Shown here: in pieces, positions 3,001 to 62,742 of the stretch
Position numbering within the stretch: position 1 is the first letter of the stretch
Layout: each line of letters opens with the position of its first letter
From: Monocercomonoides exilis PA203
Taxonomy: Eukaryota; Protista; Preaxostyla
Assembly: GCA_001643675.2 (NCBI GenBank)
Contig: LSRY02000011.1
Coordinates: forward strand, 1 to 64,000
Length of the DNA: 64,000 bases
Reading direction: 5' to 3'
Notes under the pieces: generated by a model
What the model was told of the DNA's origin: nothing
Databases searched by the model: none
Seen by the model: the letters and a program-made list of their open reading frames with translations, nothing else
Program-made: the position numbers and the translations under genes

Positions 3001-6000
3001 GCAGGGGCGGGGAGGGCGCGGTGAGTAGTGGCCTGCTGTGCAGGCCACAGGAGCCAGGGGGCTATTAGTACAAATTTTGTAATTTTATCGAAAAAGAAGT
3101 TTTGAGAATAATTGGTGTTGAGTGATATTTCGGGTGAGAGGGCCCTTTCAGAGGGAAAAGACCTTCTCAGCCGAAATATCACAAAACCTACACTCAAAAC
3201 AATAACAGAGTGTGTGAATGGGGGAGAGAGTGATCGGAGGGCGTTGCAAGGCGCTCCCCACCCTCTCCGAGCCGGAAGGAACGCCGCGCGCTAGGCCCAG
3301 TCATTTTCCCTGTTTAACCGAATTTTTCATAATATTTTTTGCGGGGCGGGGAGGGCGCGGTGAGTGGTGTGGCCTGCTGTGCAGGCCACAGGAGCCAGGG
3401 GGCTATTAGTACAAATTTTGTAATTTTTATCGAAAAAGAAGTTTTGAGAATAATTGTGTTGAGTGATATTTCGGGTGAGAGGGCCCTTTCAGAGGGAAAA
3501 GACCTTCTCAGCCGAAATATCACAAAACCTACACTCAAAACAATAACAGAGTGTGTGTGAATGGGGGAGAGAGTGATCGGAGGGCGTTGCAAGGCGCTCC
3601 CCACCCTCTCCGAGCCGGAAGGAACGCTGCGCGCTGCCCTAGGCCTTTCTCAGTCATTTTCCCTGTTTAACCGAATTTTTCATAATATTTTTTTTGCGGG
3701 GCGGGGGAGGGCGCGGTGAGTGGTGTGGCCTGCTGTGCAGGCCACAGGAGCCAGGGGGCTATTAGTACAAATTTTGTAATTTTTATCGAAAAAGAAGTTT
3801 TGAGAATAATTGTGTTGAGTGATATTTCGGGTGAGAGGGCCCTTTCAGAGGGAAAAGACCTTCTCAGCCGAAATATCACAAAAACCTACACCTCAAAACA
3901 ATAACAGAGTGTGTGTGAATGGGGAGAGAGTGATCGGAGGGCGTTGCAAGGCGCTCCCCACCCTCTCCGAGCCGGAAGGAACGCTGCGCGCCGCCCTAGC
4001 CTTTCTCAGTCATTTTCCCTGTTTAACCGAATTTTTCATAATATTTTTTTGCGGGGCGGGGAGGGCGCGGTGAGTGGTGTGGCCTGCTGTGCAGGCCACA
4101 GGAGCCAGGGGGCTATTAGTACAAATTTTGTAATTTTTATCGAAAAAGAAGTTTTGAGAATAATTGGTGTTGAGTGATATTTCGGGTGAGAGGGCCCTTT
4201 CAGAGGGAAAAGACCTTCTCAGCCGAAATATCACAAAACCTACACTCAAAACAATAACAGAGTGTGTGTGAATGGGGGAGAGAGTGATCGGAGGGCGTTG
4301 CAAGGCGCTCCCCACCCTCTCCGAGCCGGAAGGAACGCGCTGCGCGCTGCCCTAGGCCTTTCTCAGTCATTTTCCTGTTTAACCGAATTTTTCATAATAT
4401 TTTTTTGCGGGGCGGGGAGGGCGCGGTGAGTGGTGTGGCCTGCTGTGCAGGCCACAGGAGCCAGGGGGCTATTAGCACAAATTTTGTAATTTTTATCGAA
4501 AAAGAAGTTTTGAGAATAATTGGTTATTTCGGGTGAGGGCCCTTTCAGAGGGAAAAGACCTTCTCAGCCGAAATATCACAAAAACCTACACCTCAAAACA
4601 ATAACAGAGTGTGTGTGAATGGGGAGAGAGTGATCGGAGGGCGTTGCAAGGCGCTCCCCACCCTCTCCGAGCCGGAAGGAACGCGCTGCGCGCTGCCCTA
4701 GGCCTTTCTCAGTCATTTTCCCTGTTTAACCGAATTTTTCATAATATTTTTTTTGCGGGGCGGGGAGGGCGCGGTGAGTGGTGTGGCCTGCTGTGCAGGC
4801 CACAGGAGCCAGGGGGCTATTAGTACAAATTTTGTAATTTTTATCGAAAAAGAAGTTTTGAGAATAATTGGTGTTGAGTGATATTTCGGGTGAGAGGGCC
4901 CTTTCAGAGGGAAAAGACCTTCTCAGCCGAAATATCACAAAACCTACACTCAAAACAATAACAGAGTGTGTGTGAATGGGGGAGAGAGTGATCGGAGGGC
5001 GCGTTGCAAGGCGCTCCCCACCCTCTCCGAGCCGGAAGGAACGCGCTGCGCGCTGCCCTAGGCCTTTCTCAGTCATTTTCCCTGTTTAACCGAATTTTTC
5101 ATAATATTTTTTTGCGGGGCGGGGAGGGCGCGGTGAGTGGTGTGGCCTGCTGTGCAGGCCACAGGAGCCAGGGGGCTATTAGTACAAATTTTGTAATTTT
5201 TATCGAAAAAGAAGTTTTGAGAATAATTGGTGTTGAGTGATATTTCGGGTGAGAGGGCCCTTTCAGAGGGAAAAGACCTTCTCAGCCGAAATATCACAAA
5301 ACCTACACTCAAAACAATAACAGAGTGTGTGTGAATGGGGGAGAGAGTGATCGGAGGGCGTTGCAAGGCGCTCCCCACCCTCTCCGAGCCGGAAGGAACG
5401 CGCTGCGCGCTGCCCTAGGCCTTTCTCAGTCATTTTCCCTGTTTAACCGAATTTTTCATAATATTTTTTTTGCGGGCGGGGAGGGCGCGGTGAGTGGTGT
5501 GGCCTGCTGTGCAGGCCACAGGAGCCAGGGGGCTATTAGTACAAATTTTGTAATTTTTATCGAAAAAGAAGTTTTGAGAATAATTGGTGTTGAGTGATAT
5601 TTCGGGTGAGAGGGCCCTTTCAGAGGGAAAAGACCTTCTCAGCCGAAATATCACAAAAACCTACACTCAAAACAATAACAGAGTGTGTGTGAATGGGGGA
5701 GAGAGTGATCGGAGGGCGTTGCAAGGCGCTCCCCACCCTCTCCGAGCCGGAAGGAACGCGCTGCGCGCTGCCCTAGGCCTTTCTCAGTCATTTTCCCTGT
5801 TTAACCGAATTTTTCATAATATTTTTTTTGCGGGGCGGGGAGGGCGCGGTGAGTGGTGTGGCCTGCTGTGCAGGCCACAGGAGCCAGGGGGCTATTAGTA
5901 CAAATTTTGTAATTTTTATCGAAAAAGAAGTTTTGAGAATAATTGGTGTTGAGTGATATTTCGGGTGAGAGGGCCCTTTCAGAGGGAAAAGACCTTCTCA

Positions 6001-9000
6001 GCCGAAATATCACAAAACCTACACTCAAAACAATAACAGAGTGTGTGTGAATGGGGAGAGAGTGATCGGAGGGCGTTGCAAGGCGCTCCCCACCCTCTCC
6101 GAGCCGGAAGGAACGCGCTGCGCGCTGCCCTAGGCCTTTCTCAGTCATTTTCCCTGTTTAACCGAATTTTTCATAATATTTTTTTGCGGGGCGGGGAGGG
6201 CGCGGTGAGTGGTGTGGCCTGCTGTGCAGGCCACAGGAGCCAGGGGGCTATTAGTACAAATTTTGTAATTTTTATCGAAAAAGAAGTTTTGAGAATAATT
6301 GGTGTTGAGTGATATTTCGGGTGAGAGGGCCCTTTCAGAGGGAAAAGACCTTCTCAGCCGAAATATCACAAAAACCTACACCTCAAAACAATAACAGAGT
6401 GTGTGTGAATGGGGGAGAGAGTGATCGGAGGGCGTTGCAAGGCGCTCCCCACCCTCTCCGAGCCGGAAGGAACGCGCTGCGCGCTGCCCTAGGCCTTTCT
6501 CAGTCATTTTCCCTGTTTAACCGAATTTTCATAATATTTTTTTGCGGGGCGGGGAGGGCGCGGTGAGTGGTGTGGCCTGCTGTGCAGGCCACAGGAGCCA
6601 GGGGGCTATTAGTACAAATTTTGTAATTTTTATCGAAAAAGAAGTTTTGAGAATAATTGGTGTTGAGTGATATTTCGGGTGAGAGGGCCCTTTCAGAGGG
6701 AAAAGACCTTCTCAGCCGAAATATCACAAAAACCTACACTCAAAACAATAACAGAGTGTGTGTGAATGGGGAGAGAGTGATCGGAGGGCGTTGCAAGGCG
6801 CTCCCCACCCTCTCCGAGCCGGAAGGAACGCGCTGCGCGCTGCCCTAGGCCTTTCTCAGTCATTTTCCCTGTTTAACCGAATTTTTCATAATATTTTTTT
6901 TGCGGGGCGGGGAGGGCGCGGTGAGGTGGTGTGGCCTGCTGTGCAGGCCACAGGAGCCAGGGGGCTATTAGTACAAATTTTGTAATTTTTATCGAAAAGA
7001 AGTTTTGAGAATAATTGGTGTTGAGTGATATTTCGGGTGAGAGGGCCCTTTCAGAGGGAAAAGACCTTCTCAGCCGAAATATCACAAAAACCTACACCTC
7101 AAAAACAATAACAGAGTGTGTGTGAATGGGGGAGAGAGTGATCGGAGGGCGTTGCAAGGCGCTCCCCACCCTCTCCGAGCCGGAAGGAACGCGCTGCGCG
7201 CTGCCCTAGGCCTTTCTCAGTCATTTTCCCTGTTTAACCGAATTTTTCATAATATTTTTTTGCGGGGCGGGGAGGGCGCGGTGAGTGGTGTGGCCTGCTG
7301 TGCAGGCCACAGGAGCCAGGGGGCTATTAGTACAAATTTTGTAATTTTTATCGAAAAAGAAGTTTTGAGAATAATTGGTGTTGAGTGATATTTCGGGTGA
7401 GAGGGCCCTTTCAGAGGGAAAAGACCTTCTCAGCCGAAATATCACAAAAACCTACACCTCAAAACAATAACAGAGTGTGTGTGAATGGGGGAGAGAGTGA
7501 TCGGAGGGCGTTGCAAGGCGCTCCCCACCCTCTCCGAGCCGGAAGGAACGCTGCGCGCTGCCCTAGGCCTTTCTCAGTCATTTTCCTGTTTAACCGAATT
7601 TTTCATAATATTTTTTTGCGGGGCGGGGAGGGCGCGGTGAGTGGTGTGGCCTGCTGTGCAGGCCACAGGAGCCAGGGGGCTATTAGTACAAATTTTGTAA
7701 TTTTTATCGAAAAGAAGTTTTGAGAATAATTGGTGTTGAGTGATATTTCGGGTGAGAGGGCCCTTTCAGAGGGAAAAGACCTTCTCAGCCGAAATATCAC
7801 AAAAACCTACACCTCAAAACAATAACAGAGTGTGTGTGAATGGGGGAGAGAGTGATCGGAGGGCGTTGCAAGGCGCTCCCCACCCTCTCCGAGCCGGAAG
7901 GAACGCGCTGCGCGCTGCCCTAGGCCTTTCTCAGTCATTTTCCTGTTTAACCGAATTTTTCATAATATTTTTTTGCGGGGCGGGGAGGGCGCGGTGAGTG
8001 GTGTGGCCTGCTGTGCAGGCCACAGGAGCCAGGGGCTATTAGTACAAATTTTGTAATTTTTATCGAAAAAGAAGTTTTGAGAATAATTGGTGTTGAGTGA
8101 TATTTCGGGTGAGAGGGCCCTTTCAGAGGGAAAAGACCTTCTCAGCCGAAATATCACAAAACCTACACTCAAAACAATAACAGAGTGTGTGTGAATGGGG
8201 AGAGAGTGATCGGAGGGCGTTGCAAGGCGCTCCCCACCCTCTCCGAGCCGGAAGGAACGCTGCGCGCTGCCCTAGGCCTTTCTCAGTCATTTTCCCTGTT
8301 TAACCGAATTTTTCATAATATTTTTTTGCGGGGCGGGGAGGGCGCGGTGAGTGGTGTGGCCTGCTGTGCAGGCCACAGGAGCCAGGGGGCTATTAGTACA
8401 AATTTTGTAATTTTTATCGAAAAAGAAGTTTTGAGAATAATTGTGTTGAGTGATATTTCGGGTGAGAGGGCCCTTTCAGAGGGAAAAGACCTTCTCAGCC
8501 GAAATATCACAAAAACCTACACTCAAAAACAATAACAGAGTGTGTGTGAATGGGGGAGAGAGTGATCGGAGGGCGTTGCAAGGCGCTCCCCACCCTCTCC
8601 GAGCCGGAAGGAACGCGCTGCGCGCTGCCCTAGGCCTTTCTCAGTCATTTTCCCTGTTTAACCGAATTTTTCATAATATTTTTTTTTGCGGGGCGGGGAG
8701 GGCGCGGTGAGTGGTGTGGCCTGCTGTGCAGGCCACAGGAGCCAGGGGGCTATTAGTACAAATTTTGTAATTTTTATCGAAAAAGAAGTTTTGAGAATAA
8801 TTGGTGTTGAGTGATATTTCGGGTGAGAGGGCCCTTTCAGAGGGAAAAGACCTTCTCAGCCGAAATATCACAAAAACCTACACTCAAAACAATAACAGAG
8901 TGTGTGTGAATGGGGGAGAGAGTGATCGGAGGGCGTTGCAAGGCGCTCCCCACCCTCTCCGAGCCGGAAGGAACGCTGCGCGCTGCCCTAGGCCTTTCTC

Positions 9001-12000
9001 AGTCATTTTCCCTGTTTAACCGAATTTTTCATAATATTTTTTTTGCGGGGCGGGGAGGGCGCGGTGAGTGGTGTGGCCTGCTGTGCAGGCCACAGGAGCC
9101 AGGGGGCTATTAGTACAAATTTTGTAATTTTTATCGAAAAAGAAGTTTTGAGAATAATTGGTGTTGAGTGATATTTCGGGTGAGAGGGCCCTTTCAGAGG
9201 GAAAAGACCTTCTCAGCCGAAATATCACAAAAACCTACACCTCAAAACAATAACAGAGTGTGTGTGAATGGGGAGAGAGTGATCGGAGGGCGTTGCAAGG
9301 CGCTCCCCACCCTCTCCGAGCCGGAAGGAACGCGCTGCGCGCTGCCCTAGGCCTTTCTCAGTCATTTTCCCTGTTTAACCGAATTTTTCATAATATTTTT
9401 TTTTGCGGGGCGGGGAGGGCGCGGTGAGTGGTGTGGCCTGCTGTGCAGGCCACAGGAGCCAGGGGGCTATTAGTACAAATTTTGTAATTTTTATCGAAAA
9501 AGAAGTTTTGAGAATAATTGGTGTTGAGTGATATTTCGGGTGAGAGGGCCCTTTCAGAGGGAAAAGACCTTCTCAGCCGAAATATCACAAAAACCTACAC
9601 TCAAAACAATAACAGAGTGTGTGTGAATGGGGGAGAGAGTGATCGGAGGGCGTTGCAAGGCGCTCCCCACCCTCTCCGAGCCGGAAGGAACGCGCTGCGC
9701 GCTGCCCTAGGCCTTTCTCAGTCATTTTCCCTGTTTAACCGAATTTTTCATAATATTTTTTTTGCGGGGCGGGGAGGGCGCGGTGAGTGGTGTGGCCTGC
9801 TGTGCAGGCCACAGGAGCCAGGGGGCTATTAGTACAAATTTTGTAATTTTTATCGAAAAAGAAGTTTTGAGAATAATTGGTGTTGAGTGATATTTCGGGT
9901 GAGAGGGCCCTTTCAGAGGGAAAAGACCTTCTCAGCCGAAATATCACAAAACCTACACTCAAAACAATAACAGAGTGTGTGTGAATGGGGAGAGAGTGAT
10001 CGGAGGGCGTTGCAAGGCGCTCCCCACCCTCTCCGAGCCGGAAGGAACGCGCTGCGCGCTGCCCTAGGCCTTTCTCAGTCATTTTCCCTGTTTAACCGAA
10101 TTTTTCATAATATTTTTTTTGCGGGGCGGGGAGGGCGCGGTGAGTGGTGTGGCCTGCTGTGCAGGCCACAGGAGCCAGGGGGCTATTAGTACAAATTTTG
10201 TAATTTTTATCGAAAAAGAAGTTTTGAGAATAATTGGTGTTGAGTGATATTTCGGGTGAGAGGGCCCTTTCAGAGGGAAAAGACCTTCTCAGCCGAAATA
10301 TCACAAAAACCTACACTCAAAACAATAACAGAGTGTGTGTGAATGGGGGAGAGAGTGATCGGAGGGCGTTGCAAGGCGCTCCCCACCCTCTCCGAGCCGG
10401 AAGGAACGCGCTGCGCGCTGCCCTAGGCCTTTCTCAGTCATTTTCCCTGTTTAACCGAATTTTTCATAATATTTTTTTTGCGGGGCGGGGAGGGCGCGGT
10501 GAGTGGTGTGGCCTGCTGTGCAGGCCACAGGAGCCAGGGGGCTATTAGTACAAATTTTGTAATTTTTATCGAAAAAGAAGTTTTGAGAATAATTGGTGTT
10601 GAGTGATATTTCGGGTGAGAGGGCCCTTTCAGAGGGAAAAGACCTTCTCAGCCGAAATATCACAAAACCTACACTCAAAACAATAACAGAGTGTGTGTGA
10701 ATGGGGAGAGAGTGATCGGAGGGCGTTGCAAGGCGCTCCCCACCCTCTCCGAGCCGGAAGGAACGCGCTGCGCGCTGCCCTAGGCCTTTCTCAGTCATTT
10801 TCCCTGTTTAACCGAATTTTTCATAATATTTTTTTTTGCGGGGCGGGGAGGGCGCGGTGAGTGGTGTGGCCTGCTGTGCAGGCCACAGGAGCCAGGGGGC
10901 TATTAGTACAAATTTTGTAATTTTTATCGAAAAAGAAGTTTTGAGAATAATTGGTGTTGAGTGATATTTCGGGTGAGAGGGCCCTTTCAGAGGGAAAAGA
11001 CCTTCTCAGCCGAAATATCACAAAAACCTACACTCAAAACAATAACAGAGTGTGTGTGAATGGGGAGAGAGTGATCGGAGGGCGTTGCAAGGCGCTCCCC
11101 ACCCTCTCCGAGCCGGAAGGAACGCGCTGCGCGCTGCCCTAGGCCTTTCTCAGTCATTTTCCCTGTTTAACCGAATTTTTCATAATATTTTTTTTGCGGG
11201 GCGGGGAGGGCGCGGTGAGTGGTGTGGCCTGCTGTGCAGGCCACAGGAGCCAGGGGGCTATTAGTACAAATTTTGTAATTTTTATCGAAAAAGAAGTTTT
11301 GAGAATAATTGGTGTTGAGTGATATTTCGGGTGAGAGGGCCCTTTCAGAGGGAAAAGACCTTCTCAGCCGAAATATCACAAAAACCTACACTCAAAACAA
11401 TAACAGAGTGTGTGTGAATGGGGGAGAGAGTGATCGGAGGGCGTTGCAAGGCGCTCCCCACCCTCTCCGAGCCGGAAGGAACGCGCTGCGCGCTGCCCTA
11501 GGCCTTTCTCAGTCATTTTCCCTGTTTAACCGAATTTTTCATAATATTTTTTTGCGGGGCGGGGAGGGCGCGGTGAGTGGTGTGGCCTGCTGTGCAGGCC
11601 ACAGGAGCCAGGGGGCTATTAGTACAAATTTTGTAATTTTTATCGAAAAAGAAGTTTTGAGAATAATTGGTGTTGAGTGATATTTCGGGTGAGAGGGCCC
11701 TTTCAGAGGGAAAAGACCTTCTCAGCCGAAATATCACAAAAACCTACACCTCAAAACAATAACAGAGTGTGTGTGAATGGGGAGAGAGTGATCGGAGGGC
11801 GTTGCAAGGCGCTCCCCACCCTCTCCGAGCCGGAAGGAACGCGCTGCGCGCTGCCCTAGGCCTTTCTCAGTCATTTTCCCTGTTTAACCGAATTTTTCAT
11901 AATATTTTTTTTTGCGGGGCGGGGAGGGCGCGGTGAGTGGTGTGGCCTGCTGTGCAGGCCACAGGAGCCAGGGGGCTATTAGTACAAATTTTGTAATTTT

Positions 12001-55606: not shown

Positions 55607-56711
55607 CTTTATGACTTTTTCCCACATTGGATTCCCTCAAATTCCCATTTATTTTTCCTTTCCCAAAATGTATTTGGGGGTAGTACTTTATCCATGGTAT
55701 TATTAAGGCTTTCCAATCATCCGTCGTTAAAATTTTTTCAATGTTTTTATATTCAATCATTCATACGTTAAATCCCTTCAAACGAGGTTTAAGAGAATAT
55801 CTATGAATTTTAAAACATTTACTTGTGAGATTTTAGACGGACTTTTTTAATCAATGACTTAATCAAAAAAATGGATAAAATTGGACAATATTCAGAGTTA
55901 AGCCTCAGTAAATCGTGCAAACAAAACACTCTGAGACGCACAGCCCTCTGATAACATGGATTCGTCTAATCCGTCCTTCTCAGGCATGACCCCTTTAATA
56001 CTCTCATTTATCTTTACAATAGCCAGGCATATGGTCCAGCGAATGAAACGATTAATTCCAAACTAATGAAATCCGTTTTAATTACATTCACCTTATGTTT
56101 TGGACCAACCGTTCCGGCCAAATCTTTCAAAGGCGGTACAACCAATCCTTCAAGATCCTCGACTTGGAAATAAAATATCTCAATTTCCTTATAAATTTAC
56201 TCCCTTGTAAAGCAGTATAATATAGAATCTCAGTCTATATACCAGCTTCCATCCACAAGGCATTTAAAGGAGATACAAGACCCATCACATTATATTCTAG
56301 TCATATATGTTATTCTACAGCTCACCTGGAAGATATGACCCCATTTACACACATCCCTTTAACAGGATCTTCCCTTATCCAATCGTCGCCGACCGTAGAT
56401 AGGAGGGTTGTCAATATCCTCGATGGCCATGGTCTTAATTTCCATATCTCTATTTTTATCCAAAAATCAATTCCCTTTCTTAACAGGCATGCCCAGGAGA
56501 TTATCAATATAATCCTTCAATTGTCTTCTTATAATTCTCTGGAATAGATTCTGACTTAGAGGCGTTCAGTCATAATCTAACGTATGGTAGCTTCGCGGCA
56601 CTAGTTTCTCAACTAACCGCAAATGCCAATTATACGATTCTAGGGTTCCTCTCGTACTTACTAGAATTACCATCTTGACAATAATTACACAATATCAGTA
56701 GGGTAAAACTA

Positions 56712-56749
<38 letters not shown>

Positions 56750-57571
56750 TGTTAGTGGGTGAACAATCCAACACTTGGCGAATTCTGCTTCGCAATGATA
56801 GGAAGAGCCGACATCGAAGAATCAAAAAGCAACGTCGCTATGAACGCTTGGCTGCCACAAGCCAGTTATCCCTATGGTAACTTTTCTGACACCTCTGGCT
56901 TCATGCTTCGAAGAGTTTAACTCTTTACTCAAAGGATCGGTAGGCCACGCTTTCACCGTTTACATTCGTACTGAAAATTATCAAATCAAATGAGCTTTTA
57001 CCCTTCTGTTCTACGTGAGATTTCTGTTCTCACTGAGCTCATCTTAGGACACCTGCGTTGTTGTTTAACAGATGTGCCGCCCCAGCCGAACTCCCCATCA
57101 GAAAATGTCTTTGAAAGAGATTCTAGTTAATAAACAAAAAATAGAACAGGGAAATCTTTGATTATCCCAATGTCCCTTGCTTATTTATTCCTCATATCTA
57201 CAATAAAATGCGATCTCTCTTGCGAAAGAAAACAAACACTTTATTGGATTTCTTATCCCCATTCACAAGAATGAAGACATAGAAAAGGTTTAGTTCCAGA
57301 ATTACAGTTTGAAATATGACCATTAAACAAAAAAGAATATTAACCTAATAACATTCCCAACAGCCATATTTTTAGATCAAACCGTATCTCTCCTTAATCA
57401 AATAAGTAAAATAATAATAAAAGCAGCGGTATTTCAAGGTCGAGAAAAGAAAAGAAACAACAAGCTTTCAACATTGAGTTGCCCCCAACATCAAAAACCC
57501 ATCATCCCTTCTCCCGTTAACTCTTTAATCTCCGCTTTATTCTACATCTCCTAAATCATTTCACAGATTCT

Positions 57572-57609
<38 letters not shown>

Positions 57610-57726
57610 GATTTTCCAAGCCCGTTCCCTTGGCTGTGGGTTCGCTAGTAGATAGGGACAGTGGGAATCTCGTTAATCCATTCATGCGCGTCGGAAATTA
57701 ACCGACGAGGCATTTAATACCTTAAG

Positions 57727-58647
57727 TATTTTAATCAATCAAAACCTTTCCAATAGGAAAACCTTTGACCCAATGTTGCTTCTCTGTGGGAGCTATTCAA
57801 AACATTGCACACTTTAACCATCGTGTGGAATGGCACGTCCCTTAAGCCTCCTTGGATGGTTGAATAAATACAAATGTTTCATCAACAGATGTGATTATTC
57901 CCTTCCCGACAGACCCACACCTTACCGTGCTCTACGACGATCTCGACAAGTTCACACTTTTCAGATTCGCCACGGGATTAACTCATGTCAAAGATAACAG
58001 ATTATTTTTCTCCATTTACCTTGCTGGAAGCCTTCCCGTACCAGGTTGTGTTGCCGCTGGTGTGCCCACAGTTCAGAAGGAATCAATGGTTAAACGTCAG
58101 AAATCTCTTTCCTCCAGGGATCTTATAGTAGAAAAGTACAAATCAGATCTCAAAAATGTCTGGATTGATCATCCAACCACTATCTCAACCTGGTTTGGTC
58201 CAATAATATTGCAAAGTCATCGACGATACAAATCTACCAGTCGGATTCACCAAAACTGCAGAAGGGAAGTATCAATACAACTTCACCGACCCAGAATTGA
58301 CAGATAAGAAAAGATACAGACCAATTGCCTATCGGATGTCATTCCTTCTTGATCCAAATTTTACAATTCGGATTACACAGTATCCCATTTATGCCATAAT
58401 CCCTTATGTTATAATTGGGAACACCATCTTGAGACCCTTGAAACCAATAAATCAAGGAATGGCTGTCCAGGTGGTCCCCATTGCCACCATATAGTCAAAT
58501 GCCTGATACCAGGACCCTTTTCAGAATCCTAAGTATTTTTCTTTCATTTCACCATTTCCTTTTTCATATCACCAGTTCGACTAGTGAGTCAAAATACCCT
58601 TCCATTGAAAGTATCTCACTTTGCCTCCCTTTTATATATTATTAGTT

Positions 58648-58648
<1 letters not shown>
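57727..58648 (-). mobile_element. Group I intron, subgroup IE, at LSU position L1923 (GACUCU^CUUAAGG), 922 nt, carrying a homing endonuclease gene in P2.1
   Basis: It interrupts ...ATGACTCT | CTTAAGGTA. Elements on the rRNA-sense strand: guide AAGGGAGG (~58624-58631), CTAGTCGAACTGG (P2.1 5'), CCAGCGGCAACACAACCTGGTACGGGAAGG (P3/P4, 58031-58060), TAATCCCGTGGCGA (~57967-57980), GTCGTAGAGCACGGTAAGG (57920-57938), GGCTTAAGGGACGTGCC (57832-57848), and the P13 pair CTGTGGG/CCCACAG. These are IE-type core motifs. Confidence 0.93.
58086..58532 (+). pseudogene. His-Cys box homing endonuclease, I-PpoI-like, antisense to the rRNA; frameshifted twice as assembled (pseudogene or assembly error)
   Basis: Stitched translation: MVKRQKSLSSRDLIVEKYKSDLKNVWIDHPTTISTWFGPI / YCKVIDDTNLPVGFTKTAEGKYQYNFTDPELTDKKRYRPIAYRMSFLLDPNF / NSDYTVSHLCHNPLCYNWEHHLETLETNKSRNGCPGGPHCHHIVKCLIPGPFSES*. 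It contains the SHLCHN..C.N..H...E....NK.R..C...C.H..C His-Cys box. Frameshifts are near 58205 and 58360. Confidence 0.92.
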
Positions 58649-58684
<36 letters not shown>

Positions 58685-58700
58685 ATTGAATTTCTTCACT

Positions 58701-58731
<31 letters not shown>

Positions 58732-60356
58732 ATGTGTTAACACCGTTTTCCAGCCATCACATTGCTGTGTTTTAATTAAACAGTCGGATTCCCCTTGTCC
58801 GTTCCAGTTCTAAGTCGGTTGTTATTTTAAATAAAAGCCATAGCATATAATATTATCAGTGTGATGTTGCCACCCCAACTGTAATCTAGCTATAAATATT
58901 GGGACAATCTTTCGATTAAATAAAGGATATCCAGATCAAAGAAACGGCAACTGTTATAATCAAGCAACACAAAAACTGAAACCCTTATAAAAGAATCCGA
59001 ATCAGACAAAGAAAAAGACAAGTCTCCTTCCTTTATCCAACCAGCCAATTATAAGCCATTCCAATCCCCATGTCACAAGCCGTTTTTGTGTGTTCCGAAA
59101 ACTTCAATCACAACTGACAAATCCTTCACTTCTGGTAAAGTCAAAATCTATCTTTTCATATAGCAGAACTGACCTTCCAAGTCAAATCTCAAATGAAGTT
59201 TGACCCCATTCAAAATTCAAAACTCAAAAAAATCCTCTTTCCATATTACATTCAATAAACCCAACCAAAAAAGAAAAGAAAACAAGTTGCCCCATTTTCT
59301 CCCCCTTTTTATATTACCAGAACCCAACGGCTCAACCCTTAGAGCCAATCCTTTTCCCAAGGTTACGGATCTATTTTGCCGAATTCCCTTACCTACTTTT
59401 TCTAATTGACTAGAGGCTACTCACCTAGAAGACCTGTTGCGGTTATTAGTACGACCGAGTGTGAAAATCAAATTCTTAAAAAATAATATCAGTCCCCTGA
59501 AGTTTCATGGATCGTTAAACATGCACCAGACCAAATAATACTTGCATCCCTGTATAATGAAATACAAGACCTCAAATACAGTTAAAAGGTACCCTCTTCC
59601 GAGGTTTCTCTAAACTGCATTTTTATTTAGTTGAGGGCTCTTCCGACTGGGTAACCACTTCTCCGAATAAATCGTTTTCATGGTCACCGCTATAGCAAGT
59701 AACTTATAACTTATAAATTAATTATATAGCTTCATCAGTCGTTAAGAAGAAAAGAAAACTCTTCCCGGGATGTTTACCGATGAGTTCAGGCTTCTTTGCG
59801 TTACCGCTTTTGTTCTCCACATTTTTTAGTGTTATTCCAAAACTCTGTTACAAGTCTTGAAACCAAATTTTTCTTTATTATTTCGGTATAGGAATATTAA
59901 CCTATTTCCCTTTCGATTTCTATAAATATATCACACTTAACAAAAATCTTGCGATTTGTTAAGAATATTTTTAGAAAACAAACGGTATTTAACCGATACC
60001 TTAGGATCGACTAACCCATGTCTCAATGAGATTCACATGGAACCTTTCTTCACTTCAGTCTTCAAAGTATTACCCCATTTGGGAAGGTCCTCCCATTTGA
60101 ATATTTGCTACTACCACCAAGATCAGCACTATCGACCGTTCCATTTGTATTCACATACAAACTTCAAAACTTATTAAAAAAATATCCAGAACAATAGAAA
60201 AATAAATTTCCCTATCACCCCAAAATACCTTTTTATTCCTTTTTGATCGACACGCCCTCCTACATAAGCTATAACTTCCCTATCATAGCTTAGTCATGTA
60301 TAAGTATCATCGCTATTACATATGCTCCAGCGCCATCCATTTTCAGGGCCAATTCA

Positions 60357-60390
<34 letters not shown>

Positions 60391-60892
60391 ATACCAACTT
60401 CCATGGCCACCGTCCTGCTGTCAAAATGAATTGACACCTTTTCTGGTATCTATATGAGCATATATTTAGGCACTTTAACATGACGTTCGGTTCATCCCGC
60501 ATCGCCAGTTCTGCTTACCAAAAATGGCCCACTAAGAGCTTATTATTTTTCTCAACAAATATGGGTTTTCTTTTTATTAGTTAATCAAAGTTTATCTAAA
60601 AGATTTTCAAACAACTTTTTCGAGTAGTAGAAAACAAATCCTTATAAAGACTACCGGAGTCCTACGGATGTTTAGGGTTTTCTTAAAATGCAAACCAAAA
60701 CAATCAGCACGTCCAGACTCCTTAAAATAGCATTCTACAAGCCTTCTTACCAGCTTCATCAATAGAACACTAAAAGATTACCTTGCCAATTTAGAGTTTG
60801 AGAATAGGTTGAAGAAATTATTTCTCCAAGACCTCTAATCATTCGCTTTACCTGACAAAACATTCTTTCATTATAAGCTCCTGCTATCCGGG

Positions 60893-60931
<39 letters not shown>

Positions 60932-62203
60932 GAGTCTTTCGCCCCTATACCCAAATTTGACGAACGAGTTGCACGTCAGTATCGCTACGAGCTTCCATCA
61001 GAGTTTCCTCTGACTTCACCCTAATTCAGGCATAGTTCACCATCTTTCGGGTCCTAGCAGATATGCTATAACTCAAACCATAAGAAAAGCAGCCTGGTTT
61101 TACCCAAAAAAACTACCTTTTAACAAAAACTTTATGGTTGGTCAATGTTGCCAGGATCTCCACCAAAAGGATTTACCCTCTCGGCGAATAACCCCTTCAC
61201 ATTTAAGGGCTTTCCAAATAATCCCCTTCACTTTCATTACGCATCCCTGGGTTTTATCCACCCGAATACTCGCATATCTGATAGACTCCTTGGTCCGTGT
61301 TTCAAGACGGGGCGATATAAAGCGCATCAACAAAGTCAATTCTTCTTATTTGGAATAGGAAATCGATATTAGAATCGCCATATTTAAGATCAATTAGTTC
61401 ACTAATAAATAAGACAATATTACCATTTATTCTTAATTCAATATAATCAAGCGAGCTTAACCAATTGAAACAAATCTTTTAAAAAACCAAATATGAAGAA
61501 AAAGAAAACAAGTTTCTTCTTCAACTTATCTGATTTAATTAAAAAATTTGGAATAAATTGAAAAATATCATCCCAGAACTAATATATGTAAACTCTGGTA
61601 TTCTCGATATTTCCATCCCGTATCTGATATCTTTAACCAATCCATATTCTCAGATACTTATTACAAAGTATTCTATCCCTGTATCGAATCCAATAGGTAA
61701 GTCTTGCTTCAGGATTATAACAGAATAGGAAATCATCAAGTTTAATAAAAAACCTGACAATATTCAATAATGTCTATTCCCACCTTTCCTCCTATGTGGA
61801 TTTCGGTTATTATCAAAACTATAGAATACCATTGACCGCATTCTTATGTTTAACATTCATCCATACAAGCCTTTTACAGCCTATATGAAGAGAAGGGAAA
61901 TGATGCTATCCTGAGCAAAGTGGTTCGGCTATTACACCTTTCTTTTATATCCTTATAAGCACGGGTTTATATCAGATATCAATAACAATTATAAATTACT
62001 ATTCATATGTATCCCCCGACTTTACAGTTAAGCTTACAAGTCACTCAGGCCACAATACACCAACCCTCTAGTATTCCATGTCCATAAGAAAATAATTTAA
62101 TTATATTAATAAAAAACATCTCTGCACTTTCTAAATTTTATATCGCTTGTCCTTTTGGCAGTTTCAAGCACTACTTTCATTCTCTTTTCAAAGTTCTTTT
62201 CAT

Positions 62204-62237
<34 letters not shown>

Positions 62238-62742
62238 TTGTCAATATTTAGCCTTGGATGAAGCTTACCACCCAATTAGGGTTGCAATCTCAAACAACCC
62301 GACTCTATGATTGTAATGTCCAACCGTGACATTTAAACCAAAAAAAGCCATGACAAGTTTGACCCTGCCACATCTTCCTTCAGTAGGAATCGAGATCTAC
62401 TTTTTACTATATAAACGGGGCTATTACCCTCTCCGGCATTCCTTTCCAAAAACAAAAATAGAAATTTTGATCTCTAAATCATATTCCCGTCACTGACATT
62501 AATCTCTCAGAGTTTGACCCCCAAGAGAAATTACATCTTTAAAGTACAACTCTTATTACTTTCTATCAATTGTTAGCCAAGTCAAAAGTTGCCTTTCTTC
62601 TCAACTAACTCATAATAAGATTTTAACTTTGGGCTTTTCCTTCTTCCCTCGCAGGTACTAAAGGAATCCTCGTTAGTTTCTTTTCCTCCGCTTATTAAGA
62701 TGCTTCAGTTCAGCGGGTAATCTTGCTTGATATTTCAGATTG

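Follow-up and report, generated by a model that had tools for sequence, protein, structure and literature searches.

A His-Cys box homing endonuclease gene of the I-PpoI family, antisense within a group I-type intron of the LSU rRNA gene of Monocercomonoides exilis

The rDNA locus, its intron and the antisense gene

The window, that is, the whole stretch of 64,000 nucleotides that was analysed, opens contig C5 of the M. exilis genome assembly, covering its first 64 kb, and contains on its minus strand a eukaryotic LSU rRNA gene (56378–62742), then the 5.8S gene and the end of the SSU gene (Rfam). The LSU gene is interrupted by an intron of 922 nt, which appears in the Rfam LSU alignment as an insertion of 927 nt between GACUCUC (...AACUAUGACUCUC) and GUA and which harbours an endonuclease gene on the plus strand, antisense to the LSU rRNA as had been claimed in an earlier note on this DNA (Table 1). 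The first 45.8 kb of the contig (1–45822) are occupied by a 358-bp satellite (128 copies, 97% matches) with 50% GC and a strong GC skew, which adjoins an AT-rich spacer at ~45.8–56.3 kb and the rDNA unit.

Table 1. Positions in the window of the intron, the pieces of the endonuclease gene and associated features
Feature	Positions	Strand	Basis or remark
Group I-type intron at L1923	57726..58647	-	Insertion in the Rfam LSU alignment and comparison with 15 other LSU copies
Endonuclease piece 1, MVKRQKS...TWFGP, from ATG 58086	58086..58206	+	Frame 0, three-frame translation
Endonuclease piece 2, from YCKVIDDTNLPVGFTKTAEGKYQYNFTDPELTDKKRYRPIAYRMSFLLDPN; ...CKVIDDTNLPVGFTKTAEGKYQY...SFLLDPN	58207..58358	+	Frame 1, three-frame translation
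Endonuclease piece 3, His-Cys box SHLCHN...NKSRNGCPGGPHCHH..KCLIPGP	58359..58532	+	Frame 0; PF05551 and I-PpoI matches
3-nt in-frame gap with two adjacent base changes	58427..58430	+	Alignment with the intact copies
Possible N-terminal extension from an upstream ATG (MSKITDYF...)	57985..58085	+	185 aa in the intact copies
P2.1 hairpin, 5' strand CUGGUG	58569..58574	-	Hairpin whose loop holds the gene
P2.1 hairpin, 3' strand CACCAG	58056..58061	-	Hairpin whose loop holds the gene
Putative internal guide sequence GGGAGG	58623..58628	-	Read from the sequence
LSU rRNA 3' exon	57560..57725	-	GGTAGCC reads GGTATT in the window copy

According to the earlier note, three segments of reading frame join into a His-Cys box protein. 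Three-frame translation indeed reveals these segments, in frames 0, 1 and 0, and each of the motifs quoted at the time (VGFTKTAEGKYQY, SFLLDP and VSHLCHNPLCYN...NKSRNGCPGGPHCHH..KCLIPGP) is found in the translation of the window. The first piece is identical to residues 1–40 of the 151-residue ORF that is intact on contigs C96, C97 and C6. The second carries the first zinc ligand (the counterpart of Cys41 of I-PpoI), and the third, which is in frame 0 again from approximately position 58359, ends with ...DYTVSHLCHNPLCYNWEHHLETLETNKSRNGCPGGPHCHHIVKCLIPGPFSES ahead of the stop codon TAA (58530–58532). An upstream ATG possibly adds an N-terminal extension, which in the window is broken by a C missing after position 58034. 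The extension overlaps the ribozyme core on the opposite strand, and its EAFPVPGCVAAG motif recurs in longer metagenomic relatives; because its DNA is common to gene-less introns, a constraint acting on the RNA may explain its conservation.

The description of the gene as hidden was correct in part. The catalytic segment is absent from the ORF list as an ORF, but truncated models exist at NCBI, both on intact copies (MONOS_17330 and MONOS_18501; P0001) and on the window copy (MONOS_17262; P0039), all of them labelled 'hypothetical' or 'uncharacterized'. Neither of the M. exilis genome papers mentions rDNA introns or homing endonucleases.

The junctions of the intron in every other copy read GACTCT/CAAC...AAAATG/CTTAAGGTAGCC (15 copies with both junctions readable; slashes mark the junctions). 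We take the insertion position, CTCT/CTTAAGGTAGC, to be L1923 on the basis of Escherichia coli landmarks and of Tetrahymena L1925, presumably inside the I-PpoI recognition sequence and 2 nt upstream of the I-PpoI/Tetrahymena site. The assignment to L1923 in the earlier note is thereby retained, with the offset of 2 nt from the I-PpoI site as a small correction. The half-site of the target is GGTATT in the window copy only, every other copy having GGTAGC.

As read from the sequence, the putative guide GGGAGG could base-pair with the end of the 5' exon (...CUCU), forming U.G at the splice site, and the AAG ahead of the guide could do so with CUU of the 3' exon. Together with the terminal G of the intron in the other copies, these features are hallmarks of group I introns and suggest membership of this class. 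The Rfam group I model RF00028 gave no match to the window intron at E ≤ 1 and no match to a gene-less 410-nt copy at E ≤ 10. This model is weak on nuclear IE and IC1 introns, for which the absence of a match is no ground for exclusion, so that the putative group I status draws on the splice-site rules, the insertion position and partial helices.

Among the helices, P2 and P2.1 are well supported, the latter in three compensatory versions, while the core helices show almost no variation between intron copies and consequently contribute little. The gene-less introns (398–418 nt) align with the gene-bearing ones except within one loop, that of the second hairpin following P1. In the former, a stem formed by CUGAUA and UAUCAG closes a loop of 25–28 nt; in the gene-bearing introns of M. 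exilis, CUGGUG and CACCAG enclose a loop of 507–521 nt; and in a metagenomic relative, CAGACC and GGUCUG enclose one of 524 nt. Preservation of the stem by compensatory changes, together with the presence of the gene in its loop, fits P2.1, so that the earlier placement of the gene is upheld and can be narrowed to the terminal loop of a hairpin lying between P2 and P3.

Protein family, functional residues and predicted fold

The third piece alone (59 residues, 58353–58529) passes the Pfam check that had been proposed for it, matching PF05551 (zf-His_Me_endon) with an E-value of 4.3e-7 and 30.6 bits (cut-off 27), and matches I-PpoI chains with an E-value of 3.3e-7. With the intact 151-residue ORF (L002:1870–2322) the values improve to 2e-10 and 41.4 bits for PF05551 and to 3.4e-14 for I-PpoI, the latter over residues 41–148. 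The SHLCHN and NKSRN motifs align to I-PpoI in both the window piece and the intact copy.

Ten functional positions of I-PpoI (C41, H98, C100, C105, H110, N119, C125, C132, H134 and C138), the roles of which are as given in PMC9548176, have identical counterparts in the intact ORF and are invariant across an alignment of 23 family members. The catalytic histidine (I-PpoI H98) and the metal-binding asparagine (N119) correspond to H103 and N124 of the intact ORF, and the eight zinc ligands to C44, C105, C110, H115, C130, C136, H138 and C142. The window copy has one residue too few between H115 and N124.

An AlphaFold model calculated from the family alignment has a mean pLDDT of 87 and a pTM of 0.79. 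A Foldseek search of the PDB with this model returned four matches at E ≤ 0.001, all of them I-PpoI (best E-value 1.8e-9, TM 0.62–0.63), the next match being the HNH enzyme I-HmuI with an E-value of 0.09. Profile, sequence and fold comparisons thus converge on the identity that had been proposed from the motifs, namely an I-PpoI-like His-Cys box protein.

That the resemblance is due to chance or is a relic, with no functional endonuclease family behind it, is scarcely conceivable. In favour of this reading, the middle piece alone finds no PDB entry and yields only a sub-threshold DUF in Pfam, but the convergence of the three kinds of search on I-PpoI and the retention of all of the catalytic and zinc-binding residues speak against it. 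Moreover, a word search retrieved 39 relatives, almost all with PF05551, mostly on metagenomic contigs of ~1 kb; the best are 58–63% identical. The window very probably holds a copy of a homing endonuclease gene that belongs, like I-PpoI, to the His-Cys box (His-Me finger) family, lies antisense in a group I-type intron and has breaks that are most likely to be assembly errors. Its identity, fold, catalytic and zinc-binding residues, orientation and position, its intact paralogues and its presence/absence polymorphism are documented, whereas expression, a target in the rDNA, cleavage and homing are inferred.

Differences between the window copy and the other copies

A search of the whole genome (82.3 Mb in 101 contigs) with the intron identified gene-bearing introns on C96, C97 and C6, against which the breaks in the window were compared. 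The window intron is 96% identical to these copies, the shortfall being due only to gaps, and is shorter than the 949–952 nt of the intact copies. The earlier note had considered that frameshifts in all copies would argue against activity; this is not the case, since the gene on C96, C97 and C6 is a single uninterrupted ORF. The two frameshifts are nevertheless real features of the window sequence and equal gaps of 5 nt and 1 nt relative to the three other genomic copies: 5 nt are missing after 58206, with one base changed at 58207, where the other copies read ...AACAATGCATTGC..., and one T of a run of five is missing after 58358. The residue noted as missing between His and Glu results from the absence of 3 nt at 58427, with two neighbouring bases changed, by which the Val of WEHHVLE in the other copies is lost; no member of the 23-protein family alignment has a gap at this Val. 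If the upstream ATG is used, a third frameshift adds to these two and to the 3-nt gap.

The frame changes could in principle be due to short spliceosomal introns, or to programmed frameshifting, in the mRNA of the endonuclease, since myxomycete nuclear His-Cys homing endonuclease genes carry spliceosomal introns of 47–51 nt (PMC9548176) and, on the intact copies, the NCBI model splices out 55 nt bounded by GT..AG. This is, however, highly improbable, as the three paralogues read through both breaks with only 5 nt and 1 nt more than the window, and the read-through product is colinear with 22 relatives without gaps. The predicted splice itself is an artefact, which deletes the catalytic motif SHLCHN...HHVLE and shifts translation into a non-homologous tail.

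Of the two states envisaged in the earlier note, a recently decayed nuclease and an intact but mis-assembled one, the latter is better supported by the intact copies, the contigs from sequencing runs, the bias towards deletions and the paper describing the assembly. The breaks are probably residual nanopore consensus errors in a multi-copy region rather than mutations. The assembly was produced from ONT R9.4.1 reads with Canu, Nanopolish and ten rounds of Pilon, and according to its authors the multi-copy parts remain under-polished (PMC8767320), a failure of the kind that would yield such breaks. Along 3.9 kb, 26 substitutions and 26 deletion runs (55 nt), with few insertions, distinguish C5 from C96, and many of the substitutions abut a gap; the excess of indels over substitutions, with deletions prevailing by ~3:1, is unlike natural decay. 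Even C96 and C97 (L002 and L003, ~3.9 kb) differ from each other by one substitution and 15 indel runs, mostly of single bases, which means that rDNA contigs of this assembly carry indel noise, a sign of residual nanopore errors in repeated regions.

Contigs from three independent runs provide a further comparison. In run X1, from the same organism, they contain AATGC after 58207, T after 58358 and TG and A at 58426–58430; in run X2, from the same organism and sample, they contain the same 5-nt and 3-nt insertions without the extra T; and in run X5, an unrelated metatranscriptome, all three insertions are present. The gap version of the window is absent from the X1, X2 and X5 contigs aligned to the intron, with the exception of the short T run in X2, although Logan contigs lose rare and minority variants and a real minority allele could be missed. 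The fraction of window 31-mers present in the best public runs is only 0.51–0.55.

The competing explanation is that the window copy is a truly decayed pseudogene, belonging to a disused subtelomeric rDNA unit on C5 that has been gaining deletions in the intron, the gene and the nearby rRNA core. The window sequence stands in the public assembly with a gene model of its own (MONOS_17262), and its changes are concentrated in the intron and the neighbouring exon, perhaps beyond the reach of gene conversion from other units. The last base of the intron is A in the window and G in 12 of 12 other intron copies; the universal rRNA sequence GGTAGCC reads GGTATT and 4 nt are lost from the rRNA core, the 3' exon stretch measuring 166 nt as against 172 nt in the other full copies (n = 13–14), i.e. 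6 nt less. The terminal G-to-A change and the lost core bases would fit a dead unit, as would the proximity of the 45.8-kb satellite. Another copy, on C50, is truly dead, being cut by a telomere, and run X2 shares the shorter T run of the window. Two features count directly against mis-assembly: gaps of 3–6 nt are large for a polished ONT consensus, and gaps are ~6 times denser in and near the intron than in the rest of the rDNA unit. On the other hand, decay leaves unexplained the deletion-rich spectrum, the substitutions lying beside gaps and the reads-derived contigs that carry the 5-nt and 3-nt segments, as well as the nearly clean remainder of the C5 rDNA unit. Decay is thus an unlikely reading, though one with real arguments in its favour, and mis-assembly is preferred.

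RIP-like mutation of the window copy (G to A and C to T at the 3' splice site) was also considered and was rejected because the differences are mostly deletions.

The preference for mis-assembly entails a caution: frameshifts in multi-copy parts of this ONT assembly should not be taken as pseudogenes without read support.

Distribution in the genome, mobility and known systems

The genome contains 16 matches to the LSU 3' exon, in 15 of which both junctions are readable, and among these 15 copies the element is optional. Four contain the intron with the gene (C5, C96, C97 and C6), eight a gene-less intron (three of them on C14, with single copies on C61, C54, C17, C29 and C101) and three, on C79 at a spacing of ~17.5 kb, have no intron and an intact target. 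The gene-less introns are of several mosaic types with interchangeable peripheral hairpins. A further fragment on C50 (L005, G000:C50:628989-632254, ~1246–1766) retains the 5' part of the LSU gene, the 5' end of the intron and the C-terminal part of the endonuclease, and ends inside the gene at ...AAGGGATTA, where it passes directly into (TTAGGG)n, of which the following 1.5 kb contain 218 units; this looks like telomere healing of a break.

The rDNA does not form one array. A tandem set lies on C79 (at ~6.1, 22.6, 40.2 and 57.4 kb), units are found on C14 at 17.9 kb, 35.6 kb and 2.617 Mb, and others on C5, C54, C96, C97, C101, C6, C17, C29 and C61; the location of single units near contig starts or at high coordinates suggests that they are subtelomeric. 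In run X1, the summed contig depth is 6,000–12,000 over the intron core (57788–57973) and ~48 over the gene, depth here being a sum over variants. The gene-less intron sequence in X1 is therefore far above the ~2:1 copy ratio of the assembly, which reflects either copies collapsed in the assembly or intron RNA in the library, the kind of library being our guess.

By analogy with I-PpoI, the protein would bind uninterrupted rDNA as a zinc-stabilised dimer and would cut both strands with its conserved His/Asn–metal site. Repair from an intron-bearing copy would transfer both intron and gene to the cleaved allele. The intron RNA would self-splice out of the pre-rRNA, and the antisense gene would need a Pol II transcript of its own. 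C96 and C6 share an identical gene-bearing intron, although the flanks of these units differ by ~2%, a pattern that fits recent spread or conversion. On the other hand, intact-looking genes coexist in one assembly with three uncut target sites, which argues for an enzyme that is silent, weak or kept away from its targets rather than freely active. It is doubtful that the enzyme is active and that homing is ongoing among dispersed subtelomeric rDNA units, with the C79 array staying uncut, with a whole cycle of invasion, gene loss and intron loss together with target shielding represented in one genome, and with an element acquired from another gut eukaryote.

With regard to expression, AAUAAA and AAAUAA are the poly(A) signals of M. 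exilis, and neither occurs on the gene strand within ~300 nt of the stop codon, the nearest lying ~300 nt away in the exon. A contig of 625 nt from the X5 metatranscriptome (window positions 57954–58564) contains the gene in its intact frame with five base changes, and indicates that an environmental sample contained a close relative of M. exilis carrying this element. As a sign of expression it is ambiguous, as it could be pre-rRNA or DNA. By hand count, four of its changes are non-synonymous and one is synonymous, too few for an inference about selection. Small shares of the intron core were also observed in rat and bovine gut metagenomes.

A close parallel among the relatives is provided by metagenomic L1923 introns (L027–L029; P0008, 192 residues), which, as in M. 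exilis, have the junctions GACTCT/CAAC...AAATG/CTTAAGGTAGCC, the same hairpin and an antisense gene, and for which no description was found in the literature searched. The P0008 protein is 60% identical to that of M. exilis and the ribozyme core is recognisably homologous, whereas the host is a different one: its rDNA unit, with LSU, 5.8S and SSU genes, has a linked 5S gene and an LSU of conventional length. An intron with an antisense gene at the same L1923 junction and with a homologous core implies that intron and gene move together and are found in hosts distant from one another. A different situation is met in P0021, a relative of 218 residues (56% identical, with PF05551) encoded at 4001–4657 of a Logan contig from SRR31968122 (L030): the gene adjoins an Na+/H+ exchanger gene, with no rRNA in the 6.2 kb (Rfam), and could represent a His-Cys box gene that is free-standing or has been relocated.

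The reviews consulted name algae, fungi, myxomycetes and ciliates as hosts of nuclear group I introns, and metamonads are absent from them. In the literature searched, no mention was found of L1923 introns or of group I introns or homing endonuclease genes of oxymonads or Monocercomonoides. If active homing and transfer from a gut eukaryote hold true, this would be the first nuclear group I intron with a homing endonuclease to be described in Metamonada. In the public annotation of the mitochondrion-less M. exilis, the gene figures only as truncated 'hypothetical proteins', with a predicted splice that drops the catalytic motif. The empty, gene-less and gene-bearing L1923 sites of one genome constitute a natural system for the life cycle of a homing element, which could also shed light on the way in which rDNA gives rise to the product of an antisense protein gene. 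A His-Cys enzyme with a universally conserved rDNA target, 2 nt away from the I-PpoI site, could in addition serve as a rare cutter.

Among described proteins, a close counterpart is I-PpoI from Physarum polycephalum (Ppo.L1925; PDB entries 1A73, 1CZ0 and others), which belongs to the same His-Cys box family, with 30–31% identity over ~108 residues, agrees with the M. exilis protein in the catalytic His and Asn and in all eight zinc ligands, and is the only significant structural match. Its gene, too, lies in an intron of nuclear LSU rDNA, one of group I, which is inserted in the same conserved CTCTCTTAAGGTAGC stretch. However, its intron is inserted at L1925 and its gene has the sense of the rRNA, in contrast to the L1923 insertion and the antisense gene of M. 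exilis. The M. exilis protein and its 22 aligned relatives end immediately after the second zinc motif and lack the C-terminal tail of ~19 residues of I-PpoI. These proteins instead possess an N-terminal helix, predicted with confidence, to which no I-PpoI residues are aligned, and in the M. exilis protein R61 of I-PpoI is replaced by Lys.

Antisense His-Cys homing endonuclease genes are already known, and the novelty here is an L1923 member from an oxymonad that has been mis-annotated publicly. The antisense examples in the searched literature are only those of Dir.S956-2 and Dsq.L2066 (PMC9548176), encoding I-DirII and I-DsqI, for which expression and cleavage have been shown. These differ from the M. 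exilis gene in their insertion sites (S956 and L2066), in having a small spliceosomal intron and in the AAUAAA near the stop codon; the M. exilis gene, known from sequence, belongs to an oxymonad and has neither a spliceosomal intron nor a nearby poly(A) signal. In both cases, a His-Cys gene lies opposite the ribozyme in a peripheral hairpin of a nuclear rDNA group I or group I-type intron (PMC9548176, PMC3679873), and the two systems share the same puzzle, the expression of a protein gene from rDNA.
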